Of a stretch of 64,000 nt of DNA, positions 43,790 through 52,248 are shown in pieces. A program made the position numbers and the translations under genes. The stretch spans positions 1,798,001 to 1,862,000 of the forward strand of contig BQFW01000013.1 of NCBI GenBank assembly GCA_020891255.1, in the 5' to 3' direction. How positions within the stretch are numbered: the first letter of the stretch is position 1; every line of letters starts with the position of its first letter. Under the pieces are notes generated by a model. That model made no database searches. It was not told the origin of the DNA and saw only the letters and a program-made list of their open reading frames with translations. This stretch comes from Entomortierella parvispora E1425. Its lineage: Eukaryota > Fungi > Mortierellomycota.

Positions 43790-44340
43790 CGGAGGTGGAA
43801 ATTCCTCAGGTTTCCCTTTATCACCGAGGTCAGACTGGTCGTGACATCAAATGAACAAAGGAATGGGAGCCCCAGCCTTGTAACCGAGGCAAAGCTCATG
43901 TTCCAATGCTAAAACGAACGCGGACTTTCCTGTATCTGCTTCAACATAAATCAACAAGACGGCAGCTTTGCTCCGGAGGAAATCTTGGACACGCAGACGG
44001 AGAGGCATTAGGCTGTCCTTGTCGTCTGAAAGACGGAGACTTCTTTTGCATAACAGCTCGATAGAGTCGGAGGGCTGCTCGTAGTTATGGATGCGAAGAC
44101 GTCGAAGGCGGTCTATCATAAGCTCCAGATCCAATTTATCGTCCACTTTTTTCAAAAGGATTGGGGGATTTCGGCAGCTCCCATCTGGCTTCGCAATGGG
44201 GTATGGGAAAAAAGGGCCGTGTTTCCATCTGACTTTAGGACAAAGGATAGCAGTGCTCCTTGGTGATCGTCTCGGCTTCTCGGCTCATGTAGGTCTTGAA
44301 GACTGAGTGTCTAGCGCATGAACGAATGCCAATCAGAGGC
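43790..44340 (-). pseudogene. Degenerate NACHT (NLR-like) gene fragment of the Mortierella type
   Basis: ORF 43847-44155 reads DRLRRLRIHNYEQ...KRSLRLSDD...VQDFLRSKAAVLLIYVEADTGKSAFVLALEHELCLGYKAGAPIPLFI*. This resembles the pre-NACHT/Walker A region (VxxFL...LILGDSGAGKSTF..LEHELW...IPLFINL) of Mortierella NLRs as I recall them. The Walker A is eroded and there are flanking stops and frameshifts. Confidence 0.6.
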
Positions 44341-45506
44341 ACGTGCCAAAGATAATGATAACTCCATCCCTTCGTTTGGCGGATAACAAACTTGCATTCT
44401 GTGCTGTGCGGACGTACCCTTGATATCAAAATTTGGATTGGCCAGTGGTTTGTTGTTTATGATCAGTCGAACAGAACACCGAAGGGATAAGATGACAATG
44501 GCAATGGAATGGTAATGGCATTGGCAATGGCAGATGTGTGAAAATGGATGAAGAGATGAGGGGGGTCGACTTGAATGGCAGAGGACGAGAAGCAACCCAT
44601 CTCGCAGCTGTGGCTTCGGGAAGGGGACACTCTGCCTTTTCATCTGGGTAGCACAAGATGCTGGAGAAGAAAAGTTTTCGTGGAAGAGTTGTTAGGATGG
44701 CCGTGCCTTGGTGGAGTGCCTTGGTGGAGAGACTTGCAGTAGGGACCCACACTGTTGGCCCTTTGTTGCCACAATGCAATCTACTGTTCGTATCGACTGG
44801 GCACAGGAGAGCGTGCGCGCTTGTCTTTGCCTTTCTTTTCTCATCTGTGGGCAGGACAACAGCCTGTGCATGGTAGATCTTTTTTTTTCTTTCGTTTTCT
44901 ACTCATTCATCCTTTCTTCGACATCCGATCCTTTCTTCGACATCCCCCTTTCTTCTCTCCTTCCTTCCATCCCACTAGATATGTCCTTGAGAACCAATCT
45001 CATCGATCAAAAATTGGTGACCGCATGGACAGCTGGGAGGGTTGTTGTCCATGATCGCATCGCGTCCAAAAAAACGCGTCTTTGACCTTTTCTGCAGTTA
45101 TTTGACGCACGTCCCACAAGAATCCGAAAAAAAAAAAAAAAAAAACTCGATTTGGATTAATTGTTGTTCGCAAGCACAGTTTCGCTGCTTTATGTATTTC
45201 TGGCTGTATTGTCGTGTAACTGAGGGTATCGTTATATTCTTGCGATGGAAACCTTGGTTACGATTGAAACAAATCCTGAGGCTTAAGCCACGGTGGAGGA
45301 AGCTGTGATCAAAGGATTTCGTCTTGGGGAGGTTGCTGACAAGCCGCCTTGAACAGATACAAAATGGAACAACTCAGTGAACTCGGTATATACAACGTAA
45401 CTGACGTTGAAAGATGCCTTCACTACAAAAAAAAAAAAAAAAAAAAAAACAGAAAAAAAAAAGAAAATGGCGAAAACCTACAGTCCAGATACTGATTCGG
45501 CCCAAC

Positions 45507-48500
45507 CTATTTTTTGCTGGAAAATTGATTGACCCGTCAGGAAGAAAGGAATAAGGTCATCGTGTGAGTTACAATCTTGCAATTGTCATGTCTTCGTCGT
45601 TATGAGCAATTAGTAGGCTTGTCTTACTAGCTGATTGAGAAAACCAAATACGCCGGGTAGAAACATAGGTGTCCATTTTAGTTCCAATTTTGTCATGTGG
45701 TCGTCCTCACCAACAATCAGCTGGTTTGCCTTACCAGCTGATTGAGAAAAACAGAAGCGCCAGGGAGAAATACAGGCGGCGTTGTTAGTTACAATCTTGT
45801 AATTGATATGACTTCGTCGTTATGAGCAATTAGCGAGCTTGACGTACCGCCTGATTGAGAATAACAGAAGCGCCAGGGAGAAATACAGGTGGCCGTGTTA
45901 GCTCCAATGTTACAATTGCTATGACTTCGTCGTTATAAGCAATTACGAGTTTGACGTACTCGCTGATTGAGAAAAACAGAAGCACCAGGGAGAAATACAG
46001 GTGGCCAAGTTAGTTCAAACTTGCAATTGCGATGTCTTCGTCGTTATGAGCAATTAGCGAGTTTGACTTACCCGCTGATCGAGAAGAACAGAAACGCCAG
46101 GTAGAAATACAGGTGGCCATGTTAGTTCCAATGTTACAGTTGATATATCTTCGTCGCTATGAGCAATAAGTAGGCAGTAGGCTTGTCTTACTAGCTGATT
46201 GAGAAAAACAAACACGCCGGGTAGAAACATAGGTGGCCATTTTAGTTCCAATCTTGCGATTTTCATGTCTTCGTCGTTATGAGCAATTAGTAGGCTTGTC
46301 TTACTGGCTGATTGAGAAAACCAAACGCGCCGGGTAGAAACATAGGTAGCCATTTTAGTTCCAATTTATCAGCTGTCATGTGGTCGTCCTCACCAACAAT
46401 GAACTGGTTTGCCTTACCAGCTGATTGAGAAAAACAGAAAAGCCAGGGAGAAATACAGGCGGCAGTGTTAGTTACAATTTTGTAATTGTCATGTCTTCGT
46501 CGTTCTGAGCAATTAGTTGGCGTGTCTTACGGGCTAATAAAAAACAGAAGTGCCAAGTAGAAATACAGGTAGCCATGTCAGTTACAATCTTGAAATTGCT
46601 CTGTCTTCGTCGTTATGAAAAATTAGTTGGCGTGTCTTACGGGCTAATGAAGAACAGAAACACCAGGAAGAAATATAGGCGGCCATGTTAGTTCCGATGT
46701 TACAACTGTTACGTCTTCGTCGTTATGAGCGATTAGGGAATTTGACGTACTCGCTGATCGAGAAAAAGAGAAACGCCAGGGAGAAATACAGGTGGCCATG
46801 TTAGTTCAATCTTGCAATTTCTATGTTTTCGTCGTTATGAGCAATTAGCGAGTTTGATGTACCGGCTGATCGAGAAGAACAGAAACGCCAGGGAGAAATT
46901 CAGGTGGCCGTGTTAGCTCAATCTTGCAATTGCTATGTCTTTGTCGTTATGAGCAATTAGTTGGCTTGTCTTACGGGCTAATTAAGAACAGAAACGCCAG
47001 GTAGAAATACAGGTGGCCATGTTAGTTCAATCTTTCAACTGCTATGTCTTCATCGTCATGAGCAATTAGTGGGCATGTCTTACGGGCTAATTAAGAACAG
47101 AAACGCCAGGTAGAAATACAGGTGGCCGTGTTAGTTCCTATCTTGCAATTTTCATGCAGTCGTCCTCACCAACAATGAATTGGTTTGCCTTACGTGCTGA
47201 TCGAGAAAACAGAAGTGCCAGGGAGAAATACAGGTGGCCGTGTTAGTTCCAATTTTACAATTTGCTATGCCTTTGTCGTTATGAGCAATTAACGAGTTTG
47301 ACGTACTTGCTGATTGAGAAAAACAGAAATTCCAGGAAGAAATGCAGGTGGCCATGTTAGTTCCAATGTTACAACTGAAAACTGCTATGTCTTCGTCGTT
47401 ATGAGCAATTAGCGAGTTTGACGTACTCGCTGATCGGGAGAAACAGAAATGCCAGTGAGAAATACAAGTGGCCGTGTTAGTCCAATCTTGCAACTGCTAT
47501 GTCTTCGTCGTTATGAGCAATTAGTGGGCATGTCTTACGGGCTAATAAAAAACAGAAACGCCAGGTAGAAATACAGGTGGCGATGTTAGTTACAATCTTG
47601 AAACTGCTCTGTCTTCGTTCACTATGAGAAATTAGTTGGCGTGTCTTACGGGCTAATTAAGAACAGAAACGCCAGGTAGAAATACAGCTGGCCATGTTAG
47701 TTCAATCTTTCAACTGCTATGTCTTCATCGTCATGAGCAATTAGTGGGCATGTCTTACGGGCTAATAAAAAACAGAAACGCCAGGTAGAAATACAGGTGG
47801 CCATGTTAGTTCAATCTTGCAACTGCTATGTCTTCGTCGTTATGAGCAATTAGTGGGCATGTCTTACGGGCTAATAAAAAACAGAAACGCCAGGTAGAAA
47901 TACAGGTGGCCAAGTTAGTTACAATCTTGAAATTGCTCTTTCTTCGTCATTATGAGAAATTAGTTGGCGTGTCTTACGGTCTGATTAAGAACAGAAACGC
48001 CAGAGAGAAATACGGGTGGCCATGTTAGTTCAATGTTACAATTGCTGTGTCTTCGTCGTTATGAGCAATAAGTGAGTTTGCTTTACGTCCTGATTGAGAA
48101 AAACAGAAACATCAGGGAGAAATACAGGTAGCCATGTTAGTTCAATCTTGCAATTGCTGCCTTGGTCATTATGAGCAGTTAACAATCTTCACGTACTTGC
48201 TGCTCGAGAAAACAGAAACGTCAGGGAGAAATACAGGTGGCCATGTTAGCTCTTAGCTCCAATTTATCAGCTGTCATGTGGTCGTCCTCACCAACAATGA
48301 ACTGATTTGCCTTACCAGCTGGTTGAGAAAAACAGAAGCGCCAGGTAGAAATACAGGTGGCCGTGTTAGTTCCAATGTTACAATTGCTAAGTCTTCGTCG
48401 TTATGAGCAATTGGCGAGTTTGACGTACCGGCTGATCGAGAAGAACAGGAGCGCCAGGGAGAAATACAGGTAGCCTTGTTAGTTCCATTGTTACAATGGC

Positions 48501-51129
48501 TATGTCTTGGTCGTTATGAGCAATTGGCGAGTTTGACGTACTCGCTGATCGAGAAAAACAGAAACGTCAGGGAGAGATGCAGGTGGCCGTGTTAGTTCCA
48601 ATGTTACAATTGCTATGTCTTCGTCGTTATGAGTAATTGGCGAGTTTGACGTACTCGCTGATCGGGAAAAACAGAAATGTCAGGAAGAAATACAGGTGGC
48701 CATGTTAGTTCCAATTTTACAATTGCCATGTTTTCGTCGTTATAAGCAATTAGCGAGTTTGACGTACCCGCTGATCGAGAAGAACGGAAACGCCAGGGAG
48801 AAATTCAGGTGGCCATGTTAGCTCAATCTTGCAATTGTTATGTCTTCGTTGTCATGAGCAACTAGTAGGCTTGGCTTACGGGCTAATTAAGAACAGAAAC
48901 GCCAGGTAGAAATACAGGTGGCCATATTAGTTGAATCTTGTAATTGTTATGTCTTCGTCGTTATGAGCAATTAGTAGGCTTGTCTTACTAGCTGATTCAG
49001 GAAACCAAACACGCCGGGTAGAAACATAGGTGGCCATTTTAGTTTCAATTTTGCAATTTTCATGTAGTCGTCCTCACCAACAATGAATTGGTTTGCCTTA
49101 CGTGCTGATTGAGAATAACAGAAACATCAGGGAGAAATACGAATGGCCATGTTAGTTCAACCTTTCAACTGCTACGTCCTCATCATCATGAGCAACTAGT
49201 AGGCTTGTCTTACGGGCTAATTAAGAACAGAAACGCCGGGTAGAAATACAGGTGGCCATGTTAGTTACAACAACCTTGTAGTTGCTACATATGTCTTCGT
49301 CGTTATGAGCAATTAAAAGGCTTGTCTTACTAGCTGATTGAGGAAACCAAACACGCCGGGTAGAAACATAGGTGGCCATTTTAGTCCCAATTTATCAACT
49401 GTCATGTGGTTGTCCTCACCAACAATGAACTGGTTTGCCTTACCAGCTGGTTGAGAAAAACAGAAGCGCCAGGTAGAAATACAGGTGGCCGTGTTAGTTC
49501 CAATGTTACAATTGCTAAGTCTTCGTCGTTATGAGCAATTGGCGAGTTTGACGTACCGGCTGATCGAGAAGAACAGGAGCGCCAGGGAGAAATACAGGTA
49601 GCCTTGTTAGTTCCATTGTTACAATGGCTATGTCTTGGTCGTTATGAGCAATTGGCGAGTTTGACGTACTCGCTGATCGAGAAAAACAGAAACGTCAGGG
49701 AGAGATGCAGGTGGCCGTGTTAGTTCCAATGTTACAATTGCTATGTCTTCGTCGTTATGAGTAATTGGCGAGTTTGACGTACTCGCTGATCGGGAAAAAC
49801 AGAAATGTCAGGAAGAAATACAGGTGGCCATGTTAGTTCCAATTTTACAATTGCCATGTTTTCGTCGTTATAAGCAATTAGCGAGTTTGACGTACCCGCT
49901 GATCGAGAAGAACGGAAACGCCAGGGAGAAATTCAGGTGGCCATGTTTGCTCAATCTTGCAATTGTTATGTCTTCGTTGTCATGAGCAACTAGTAGGCTT
50001 GGCTTACGGGCTAATTAAGAACAGAAACGCCAGGTAGAAATACAGGTGGCCATATTAGTTGAATCTTGTAATTGTTATGTCTTCGTCGTTATGAGCAATT
50101 AGTAGGCTTGTCTTACTAGCTGATTCAGGAAACCAAACACGCCGGGTAGAAACATAGGTGGCCATTTTAGTTTCAATTTTGCAATTTTCATGTAGTCGTC
50201 CTCACCAACAATGAATTGGTTTGCCTTACGTGCTGATTGAGAATAACAGAAACATCAGGGAGAAATACGAATGGCCATGTTAGTTCAACCTTTCAACTGC
50301 TACGTCCTCATCATCATGAGCAACTAGTAGGCTTGTCTTACGGGCTAATTAAGAACAGAAACGCCGGGTAGAAATACAGGTGGCCATGTTAGTTACAACA
50401 ACCTTGTAGTTGCTACATATGTCTTCGTCGTTATGAGCAATTAAAAGGCTTGTCTTACTAGCTGATTGAGGAAACCAAACACGCCGGGTAGAAACATAGG
50501 TGGCCATTTTAGTCCCAATTTATCAACTGTCATGTGGTTGTCCTCACCAACAATGAACTGGTTTGCCTTACCAGCTGATTGTGAAAAACAGAAGGGCCAG
50601 GGAGAAATACAGGTGGCCGTGTTAGTTCCAATGTTACAATTGCTATGTCTTTGTCGTTATGAGCAATTAGCGATTTTGACGTACTCGCTGATCGAGAAAA
50701 ACAGAAGCACCAGGGAGAAGTACAGGTGACCATGTTAGTTCCAATGTCACAATTGCCATGTTTTCGTCGTTATGAGCAATTAGCGAGTTTGACGTACCCG
50801 CTGATCGAGAAAAACAGAAACGCCAGGGAGAAATTCAGGTGGCCATGTTAGTTACAATCTTTAAATTGCTATGCTTTCGTCGTAGAGAAATTAGTAGGCT
50901 TGTCTTACGGACTGATTAAGAACAGAAACACCAAGGAAAGTGTTAGTTCCAATCTTGCCATGGTTATGTTTTCGTCGATACTGATAATAGGACGGGTTGT
51001 CGTAATCGACAGCCAGTGTTGATCCAGAGGCGCCCGTAGTCTTGCGCTTTTCTTCTGTTCAACTTACACGGGAGCAGCGATAGTGAGACCTAGAAAGGCA
51101 ACAAGGACAAGAAGGAATTCGATTTTCAT
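45507..51129 (-). CDS. Micro-exon gene encoding a 71-aa secreted Pro/Cys/Tyr/Asp-rich peptide: 50 exons, 48 of them 3 nt
   Basis: Exon 1 is 51129-51068 (ATG...GCT CCC GT|GTAAGT). Micro-exons in transcript order (lowest coordinate, minus-strand triplet): 50909 TCC, 50798 CGG, 50685 CGA, 50572 CTG, 50459 CTA, 50342 CCC, 50230 CAC, 50117 CTA, 50008 CCC, 49896 CGG, 49783 CGA, 49670 CGA, 49557 CCG, 49444 CTG, 49331 CTA, 49214 CCC, 49102 CAC, 48989 CTA, 48880 CCC, 48768 CGG, 48655 CGA, 48542 CGA, 48429 CCG, 48316 CTG, 48197 CAA, 48087 GAC, 47978 ACC, 47868 CCC, 47759 CCC, 47650 CCC, 47539 CCC, 47427 CGA, 47307 CAA, 47194 CAC, 47084 CCC, 46975 CCC, 46863 CCG, 46751 CGA, 46641 CCC, 46531 CCC, 46418 CTG, 46305 CCA, 46192 CTA, 46072 CGG, 45960 CGA, 45848 GCG, 45735 CTG, 45628 CTA. 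The last exon is 45516-45507 (TTTCCAG|C AAA AAA TAG). CDS length 62+144+10 = 216 nt. Confidence 0.8.
45517..50965 (-). repeat. Tandem array of ~107-120 bp units, each one intron plus one 3-nt exon
   Basis: Minus-strand consensus: GTA(A/C)G..aaactcgctaattgctcataacgacgaagacatagcaattgtaacattggaaCTAACatggccacctgtatttctccctggcgtttctgtttttctcgatCAG-NNN. There are 48 AG-NNN-GT junctions. Confidence 0.95.
48316..50574 (-). repeat. Higher-order 1128-bp (10-unit) tandem duplication inside the micro-exon array
   Basis: Eleven consecutive micro-exon positions are offset by exactly 1128 bp with identical triplets (e.g. 50572/49444/48316 CTG; 50342/49214 CCC). The unit encodes CYPTYPGDDR. Confidence 0.9.
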
Positions 51130-52248
51130 TGTAAGGCCGATTGGAGTTGTGTGAAGTAGTTGAGCAAGGTCAGGATGAAGAGAAAGGTGTGGATCAAGCG
51201 ACGGTCATTACACAAAGTAAACAGCGGTATTTAAAGGAGTCAGAGCAAAGAAAATATCTAGGCCTTAGTTCAAACTGGCATTGTTTTTTCAGATCATTAA
51301 AGGGGCACCACTCACCTTGCACTTACTTTCTGGATGGAGACACTCAATATCAGATTACAGTCATTCACATTTACTGACATTGCGAATTTCAGATCGCGGC
51401 AGTATGTTTTTTTTTTTTTGTTTGTCAGAAATTGGTTGACGACAACTGGTGGCCGTGGAAAGCAAGAGCACTGCGTTAGATTGCGCACCTGAATCACTGG
51501 AAACAGCTGGCAAGAGTGCGTTTTGTGTTTCTGTGAGTCTTCATTAAGCCTTGCCAAGATTGGGCCGGCATCCGCTCGAACCACGCGTGCCCTGGCAACA
51601 CATCCTTTTTTCAAACAAAAACAAAAAAAAAGAAAGGGCGTTAGTCTGGTCGGGCATCGTTTTCCTTCAGACCCTGCAAGCGAGGGAATGGAGAGTGGTG
51701 CACAGGTCTGTTGTTGACATAAGTAGAAGGTCAAAGAGTGGGCTGAGACGCTCTACATGCCGATTGAGTAGAGTCGGATATACCAAAAAAAGATAGGGCA
51801 GGACACCAACCACAGGAGGGACTCAGGGTAACAGGCATCCTAAGTTTTCATCCGCCACCCATTCCCTCAGCCCTGCTGCAATTTTCTTTGTGCGACCAGC
51901 CCAGGGTCATTATAACAAAATCATGGCAAATTAAGAGGCAACGCAAAAGCAAAGTCAACCTTCTGACATTACCTGTGAATCGACCACTTTTTTTTGTAGA
52001 TCTCGACTACATGTTCAATTGCAGGACCTGCGAAATCTATTTTTGTTCACCAGTCAAGCATCGCAAGGGTTCTCTGCTTGTCAATTCGACACCAGCAGTC
52101 TAGGTACGCTTAATTTGTTCCTACATCCTTTCTGCCTCGTTGAGCCTGCAGTGCCCAAGGCAAAGAGGCCTCTCTGTCTCCCCCCTCCTCCATGGTGCGC
52201 CACCAATCTATGCCAATTTTTTATTTTATTTTTTATTTTTTTCTACTC

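Follow-up and report, generated by a model that had tools for sequence, protein, structure and literature searches.

The minus strand of a 64,000-nucleotide stretch of the Entomortierella parvispora E1425 genome (contig BQFW01000013.1, positions 1,798,001 to 1,862,000; this whole stretch is the window, and all positions below are counted within it) carries a gene-like structure in which an exon for a signal-peptide-like leader is followed by 48 exons of three bases each and then by a last exon with a prompt stop codon. A regular-expression scan for YAG/NNN/GTRNGN sites returns exactly 48 of them on this strand, from 50911 to 45628, and their spacing is 104-117 nt throughout; thus, no unit of the array is missing or dead. 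Tandem Repeats Finder describes the same region as a single array with a period of 113, 47.7 copies, and 77% matches.

Exon 1 ends in ...CCCGT and is followed at once by a perfect consensus GTAAGT donor, which makes every intron phase 2, as a first-pass annotation of this DNA had proposed. A TATA-like box and a short leader lie upstream of the start codon. The signal peptide was judged by eye. Among the micro-exons, CCC occurs 12 times, CGA eight times, CTA six, CTG five, CGG four, CAC and CCG three each, CAA twice, and CCA, TCC, GAC, ACC, and GCG once each, so that 44 of the 48 begin with C; the earlier count and its four exceptions were correct in every particular. Joined in phase 2, the exons would spell a precursor of 71 residues, with a mature part of about 51 residues in which Pro, Tyr, Gly, and Asp are abundant and which contains five Cys, a proline run, and a duplicated ...CYPTYPGDDR... 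stretch.

All three frames of the joined chain are open, because every third base is C. The openness of a frame is therefore no guide to the frame used, and the phase rests on the exon 1 donor. Phase 2 is also favored because it places the variable exon bases at the first and second codon positions. A weak GTGTAA donor within exon 1, pointed out earlier, does give an open phase-0 reading, which ends in ...SVSGL before a stop codon. The coordinates of the gene and of the features around it are collected in Table 1. The gene lies between two long homopolymer tracts: a T-rich run (coding strand) just past the stop, at 45427-45467, and an A-run at 51406-51420, about 280 nt upstream of the ATG.

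Table 1. Predicted parts of the array gene and other features of the locus, in window coordinates.
Feature	Positions	Strand	Remarks
Exon 1, coding part	51068..51129	-	ATG at 51129; 20-residue hydrophobic signal-peptide-like leader (MKIEFLLVLVAFLGLTIAAP) plus GT of the next codon
Intron 1	50912..51067	-	156 nt; 3' half is already repeat unit; CTAAC branch motif 31 nt from the acceptor
Micro-exon chain	45628..50911	-	48 three-base exons with 47 intron-like units of 104-117 nt between them
Micro-exon 1, TCC	50909..50911	-	Sole T-initial exon; GT+T = Val, synonymous
Micro-exon 26, GAC	48087..48089	-	G-initial, AA+G = Lys; weakest donor of the array (GTAAAG)
Micro-exon 27, ACC	47978..47980	-	A-initial; AC+A = Thr, synonymous
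Micro-exon 46, GCG	45848..45850	-	G-initial; GA+G = Glu
Last intron	45517..45627	-	111 nt; GTAAGA donor, TTCCAG acceptor
Last exon, coding start	45507..45516	-	C + AAA AAA TAG: final wobble C, two Lys, stop (TAG 45509-45507)
Tandem block pair	48306..50577	-	Two copies of ~1.14 kb, offset 1128 bp = 10 cassettes; one-base difference (48820 vs 49948)
Lineage-specific segment	42760..52200	.	~9.4 kb, holds the whole array gene; absent at the same site in three relatives
90-amino-acid open reading frame	43847-44119	-	Only publicly called gene inside the inserted segment; Walker-A-like ...DTGKS... by eye

Intron-Like Character of the Repeat Units

Are the units of the array introns, or do they only look like introns? 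Donors start with GTA and acceptors read YAG in all 49 units, and the exon between them is three nucleotides long 48 times, although the introns vary from 104 to 117 nt. After alignment of the 48 cassettes (one intron with its three exon bases), the intron columns alone served to build a tree, on which parsimony changes were counted column by column. Over the 48 units, neither AG nor GTA changes at any position, compared with a mean of 2.7 changes per intron column. Of the 49 introns, 44 contain a CTRAY branch motif, and in 38 of these 44 the first AG past the branch is the acceptor, compared with 42% in shuffled tails. The units thus have what is expected of ordinary U2-type introns, namely a GTRNGT-like donor, a CTRAY branch, a pyrimidine tract, a YAG acceptor, and an AG-free tail (38/44). 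As read from their sequence, this supports the view that the array units have been kept spliceable.

The same observations bear on a reading that we consider unlikely, in which the locus is not a working gene and consists of a young intron-derived satellite that keeps intron-like signals behind a leftover signal-peptide exon. Units that are only 77% alike would have to have kept AG and GTA free of change where about 13 changes are expected, and to have kept the exon length unaltered despite the variation in intron length. Moreover, the chain is bounded on one side by a start codon, a leader, and a consensus donor, and on the other by an acceptor and a prompt stop. What speaks for a satellite is that the repeats include very recent duplications and that, with three open frames, the openness of the reading frame proves nothing. 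Further evidence on both sides comes from the tree, from related strains, and from the search for transcripts, and is given with each of these below.

Several features of the introns stand somewhat apart. Upstream of CTA exons there is an intron subtype in which CTAAA replaces CTAAC and the tract is G-richer (..GTGTTTGGTTTCC..), as at 50462-50571, 50120-50229, and 45631-45734; introns of this subtype may splice less efficiently. Most units contain, at about +14 to +22 counted from the donor, another branch-like motif (TACTAAT or CGCTAAT). This motif lies about 90 nt from the acceptor, too far to serve its own intron, and could be a relic of the origin of the cassette. An alternative 42-nt mini-intron that would use the TACTAAT-like motif near the donor was rejected by eye; its next donor would be GTAACA. 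The GTAAAG that follows micro-exon 26 (48081-48089, minus strand) is the only donor without G at +5, and micro-exon 26 would be the likeliest place for any skipping or intron retention. The third base of the micro-exons, donor position -1, is C in 18, A in 17, and G in 13 cases, and never T. The lack of T at this position may reflect a constraint from the splice site, which would narrow the choice of residues that the exons can encode.

Stop-Safe Joining and the First-Base C

Why does nearly every micro-exon begin with C? The first-pass annotation saw in this a phase-2 wobble-C design that makes skipping of micro-exons frame-safe and so allows a single locus to emit a library of peptides. Much of what it said about the sequence stands. 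All 48 single-exon skips leave the chain open and together give 40 distinct peptides; a C-initial exon never completes a stop codon; each of the 11 exons that end in TA or TG is followed by C; and the two G-initial exons do alter the residue upstream, giving Lys and Glu at their respective sites. Over all donor-acceptor pairings, 16 of 1225 make a stop. When the wobble bases are drawn from local codon usage (12 long neighboring open reading frames (ORFs) in the window, with C at 30% of third positions), the mean is 60 and the minimum 18 in 5000 trials. All 16 stop-making pairings stem from the three purine changes at the first base. That skipping is frame-safe is thus correct, but this safety does not come from the phase-2 wobble C; the exon length of 3 nt alone provides it.

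Is the first base held in place? On the intron-based tree, exon position 1 has four independent changes, all of them singletons, and four or more changes are found in 30 of 107 intron columns. In a control in which the tree was built from one flank and the columns were taken from the other, 25-55% of columns had four or more changes. The first-base C is not unusually conserved, and the counts give no sign of purifying selection that holds a pyrimidine beyond the cassette background. The type of micro-exon tracks the intron-based clades. The 10-cassette block duplication (Table 1), to judge from its near identity, appears to be very recent and would repeat a 10-residue stretch of the peptide. 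Because the cassettes have been duplicated, up to and including this near-exact copy of 10, the figure of 44 in 48 is heavily pseudo-replicated. The C excess is not above what shared cassette ancestry gives, and descent from a C-first founder cassette, which is sufficient to explain it, is best read as its source. The claim of a design is thus not supported by the tree, on which the first-base column changes like the intron columns and three of its four changes are to purines.

Codon bias was tried as a source of the C and rejected, since C-ending junction codons number 45 of 49 against 18.3 expected. Another explanation is that splicing of 3-nt exons requires the C, for pairing of donor position -3 with the U1 small nuclear RNA (CAG/GURAGU) and for acceptor position +1, with the other two bases free. 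The first base of a 3-nt exon is indeed both acceptor +1 and donor -3, and many eukaryotes prefer C or A at donor -3; the complete lack of T at donor -1 suggests that some splice-related constraint acts on the exon bases. On the other hand, T-, G-, and A-initial exons persist in the array, the first-base column changes as often as the intron columns do, and a small, noisy, heuristic set of intron candidates from the window shows no general C preference at donor -3 (6/30) or acceptor +1 (9/30). We regard this explanation as highly improbable.

The selective version of the first-pass proposal, a skip-safe layout under selection in which regulated or stochastic skipping yields deletion and substitution variants of a secreted peptide as a library, all in frame and stop-free, is in our judgment very unlikely. 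The open single skips and the low number of stop pairings are what it would predict, and the donors and acceptors are nearly identical along the array, so that the sequence does not forbid the pairing of a donor with a later acceptor. Against it stand a C column no better conserved than ordinary intron columns, first-base changes of which three in four break skip safety, a C excess inflated by cassette duplication, and frame safety that the 3-nt length gives by itself. No isoform appeared in the searches of RNA runs or in the four runs described below. In addition, where fungi with short introns splice alternatively, exon skipping is the less frequent form.

The other two exon bases behave differently from the first. 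Exon positions 2 and 3 have 10 and seven changes, which places them in the top 1% and top 10% of columns, and trees built from flanks only give 11-12 and 8-9 changes. By these counts, the peptide code diverges faster than the intron around it, which is consistent with a coding role in which selection is diversifying or relaxed. Since it is precisely the two amino-acid-specifying bases that change fastest, the pattern argues against a plain satellite.

Locus History and Related Sequences

The gene next to the array is Sua5. In three relatives, L004 (91% identical), L001/L002 (82%), and L003 (Gryganskiella cystojenkinii), the Sua5 stop and the homolog of window position ~42750 lie within about 300 nt of each other, and none of the three has a tandem array at this syntenic site. 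It follows that the segment of ~9.4 kb, with the whole array gene in it, is lineage-specific; such an absence is also what the satellite reading would lead one to expect. Neither terminal repeats nor transposon domains were found in the flanks. The only publicly called gene within it was considered as NACHT-like; this was rejected, as Pfam gave no hit for it with E-values allowed up to 0.1.

The 5' end of the gene has relatives elsewhere. Window positions 51053-51258, which comprise exon 1, the 5' untranslated region, and the promoter region, match four contigs of the related strain X3, and at least four contigs of the more distant strain X9 match in the signal-peptide part only. These matches indicate a putative multigene family with a shared 5' module, and paralogs with the same 5' end in other strains count against the array being a mere satellite. 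One cassette of a relative reads TTT where the E. parvispora array has CTA. A metagenome scan for related arrays with the branch and pyrimidine motif gave one match, L005, by chance. With a 113-amino-acid ORF that reads through the array as the query, a word index returned nothing, and an exhaustive search returned only two unrelated satellites, P0121/L007 and P0122/L008, neither of which has the AG-NNN-GT pattern.

Transcription and Protein Evidence

The E1425 genome is a Nanopore-based assembly at 409x coverage, and RNA-seq of the strain has been deposited as DRA013164 (PMC8759367). Since the assembly was made from Nanopore reads, the array was probably spanned by single reads. When any type of run was searched with the neighboring genes, only DNA runs or runs of unknown kind were listed, and the matches in runs X3, X4, X9, and X10 are DNA contigs of paralogs.

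A number of results weigh against an active gene of the kind described here, or against our account of how it arose. A search of RNA runs with exon 1 as the query listed none, and the spliced form of the gene was not seen in four runs, one of them DNA of a relative and three of unknown kind. The predicted 71-residue precursor has no match among 5.8 billion proteins, and no gene is called over the array in the public annotation, although RNA-seq went into it. Each of these would sit well with a satellite. In addition, five to seven introns, all upstream of CTA exons, have CTAAA instead of CTRAY, and the number of Cys in the predicted peptide is odd. The tree test is compatible with mild constraint on the C, as four changes lie within the neutral range and not above it, and unequal crossing-over and gene conversion blur the genealogies of cassettes.

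Comparison with Known Systems

In the recursive (ratchet-point) splicing of Drosophila and vertebrates, splicing to an acceptor regenerates a 5' splice site, leaves 0 nt behind, and serves to remove one long intron. The array is alike in that a donor comes close behind each acceptor, and this is the likely way in which a 3-nt exon would be handled. The likeness is mechanistic only: at a ratchet point AG abuts GT and the exon has zero length, whereas the array always has 3 nt between the two. Ratchet points do not write coding sequence; the array would leave 3 nt at each of 48 steps.

Two other cases show that exons of 3 nt are within reach of a spliceosome. The lipS genes of Dactylellina haptotyla have two 3-nt exons (PMC5639578), and ultra-short microexons are reported from plants (PMC8831610). 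These 3-nt exons are isolated ones in otherwise normal genes, unlike a tandem chain that forms the whole mature product.

A longer chain is known from truffles, whose nank (NACHT-ANK) genes contain dozens of alternatively spliced 3-bp mini-exons (Iotti et al. 2012, Fungal Biol 116:261, as reported in PMC9815663, PMC4986451, and PMC13449251). According to these reports, the nank genes share with the array dozens of consecutive 3-bp exons, here 48, each with canonical introns around it. Their extensive alternative splicing of mini-exons is described there as protein-diversifying, which matches the idea of the first-pass annotation; the E. parvispora array is known from DNA. As portrayed in the same sources, the nank products are large intracellular NLR-type receptors of an ascomycete, in which the mini-exons diversify the recognition domain. 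The E. parvispora product, in contrast, would be a secreted peptide of about 51 residues, made by a mortierellomycete almost wholly from micro-exons set between tandemly duplicated introns. The NACHT-ANK context is absent at our locus, where the predicted product is a signal peptide plus about 51 residues and the ORFs of the flanks have no Pfam NACHT or ANK hits.

The micro-exon genes (MEGs) of Schistosoma provide a second parallel, with 35 genes giving at least 87 proteins by alternative splicing. Like the array, they have a signal-peptide exon (by eye in our case) followed by symmetric, very short exons in multiples of three. Their products are secreted, lineage-specific, and rich in isoforms, and the E. 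parvispora array resembles them in its predicted secretion and its lineage specificity. MEG exons are mostly 6-81 bp, and the introns, of 0.1-5 kb, are not tandem copies, unlike the 3-bp exons and the tandem ~110-nt introns of the array; the hosts are flatworms. The search of the 5.8 billion proteins with the precursor showed no sequence similarity to the MEG proteins of Schistosomatidae.

The truffle and schistosome genes lend precedent to a library made by skipping. Given nank, as described in the sources above, the diversifier idea is plausible, although less new. If the array did work as a splicing diversifier, it would be a second, independent fungal invention of mini-exons, used for extracellular peptides rich in Pro, Tyr, and Cys in a fungus that lives with endobacteria and close to plant roots; we rate this as quite unlikely. 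What is new here in relation to the truffle and schistosome cases is a tiny peptide with predicted secretion, its occurrence in Mortierellomycota, and the use of tandem copies of a single intron.

A Proposed Founder-Cassette Account of the Array

How might such a gene have come about? The account toward which we lean is that of a young, lineage-specific peptide gene with codon-sized exons, whose C is a copied founder base and has not been selected for skipping. The gene would be a member of an Entomortierella family, and the chain of exons would spell a small secreted peptide, about 51 residues long, with abundant Pro, Tyr, Gly, Asp, and Cys. The array would have grown by tandem duplication of a cassette composed of one ordinary U2-type intron and three exon bases. 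Since splicing removes the intron part, each added cassette would lengthen the peptide by one residue. The initial C would be a base of the founder cassette that became frozen and was passed on as the cassette was copied.

On the founder-cassette account, stop-free joining in any frame and for any combination of C-initial exons would be a real consequence and an incidental one. Such robustness probably made growth of the array, and occasional mis-splicing, cheap. Diversification of the peptide would take place mainly at the DNA level, through fast change of the bases that specify amino acids and through duplication of blocks of cassettes. Splicing would be stepwise, most likely 5' to 3', because 3 nt of exon leave no room for a 3' splice-site complex together with a U1-bound donor; as in recursive splicing, each step would regenerate the next donor.

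Conclusions

The safety of skipping C-first exons is a true property with what looks like an ordinary cause, the inheritance of a founder cassette. Robustness to mis-splicing can arise as a by-product and allow an array to expand, and is not necessarily the sign of a diversity generator. The truffle precedent makes the diversifier idea testable and not far-fetched, and it is not new in kind. If the E. parvispora array is spliced as predicted, it would represent an extreme gene structure, with 48 successive one-codon exons; such a chain is missed entirely by standard annotation and read aligners. It would also reveal a route by which a peptide can grow one residue at a time through the duplication of an intron.

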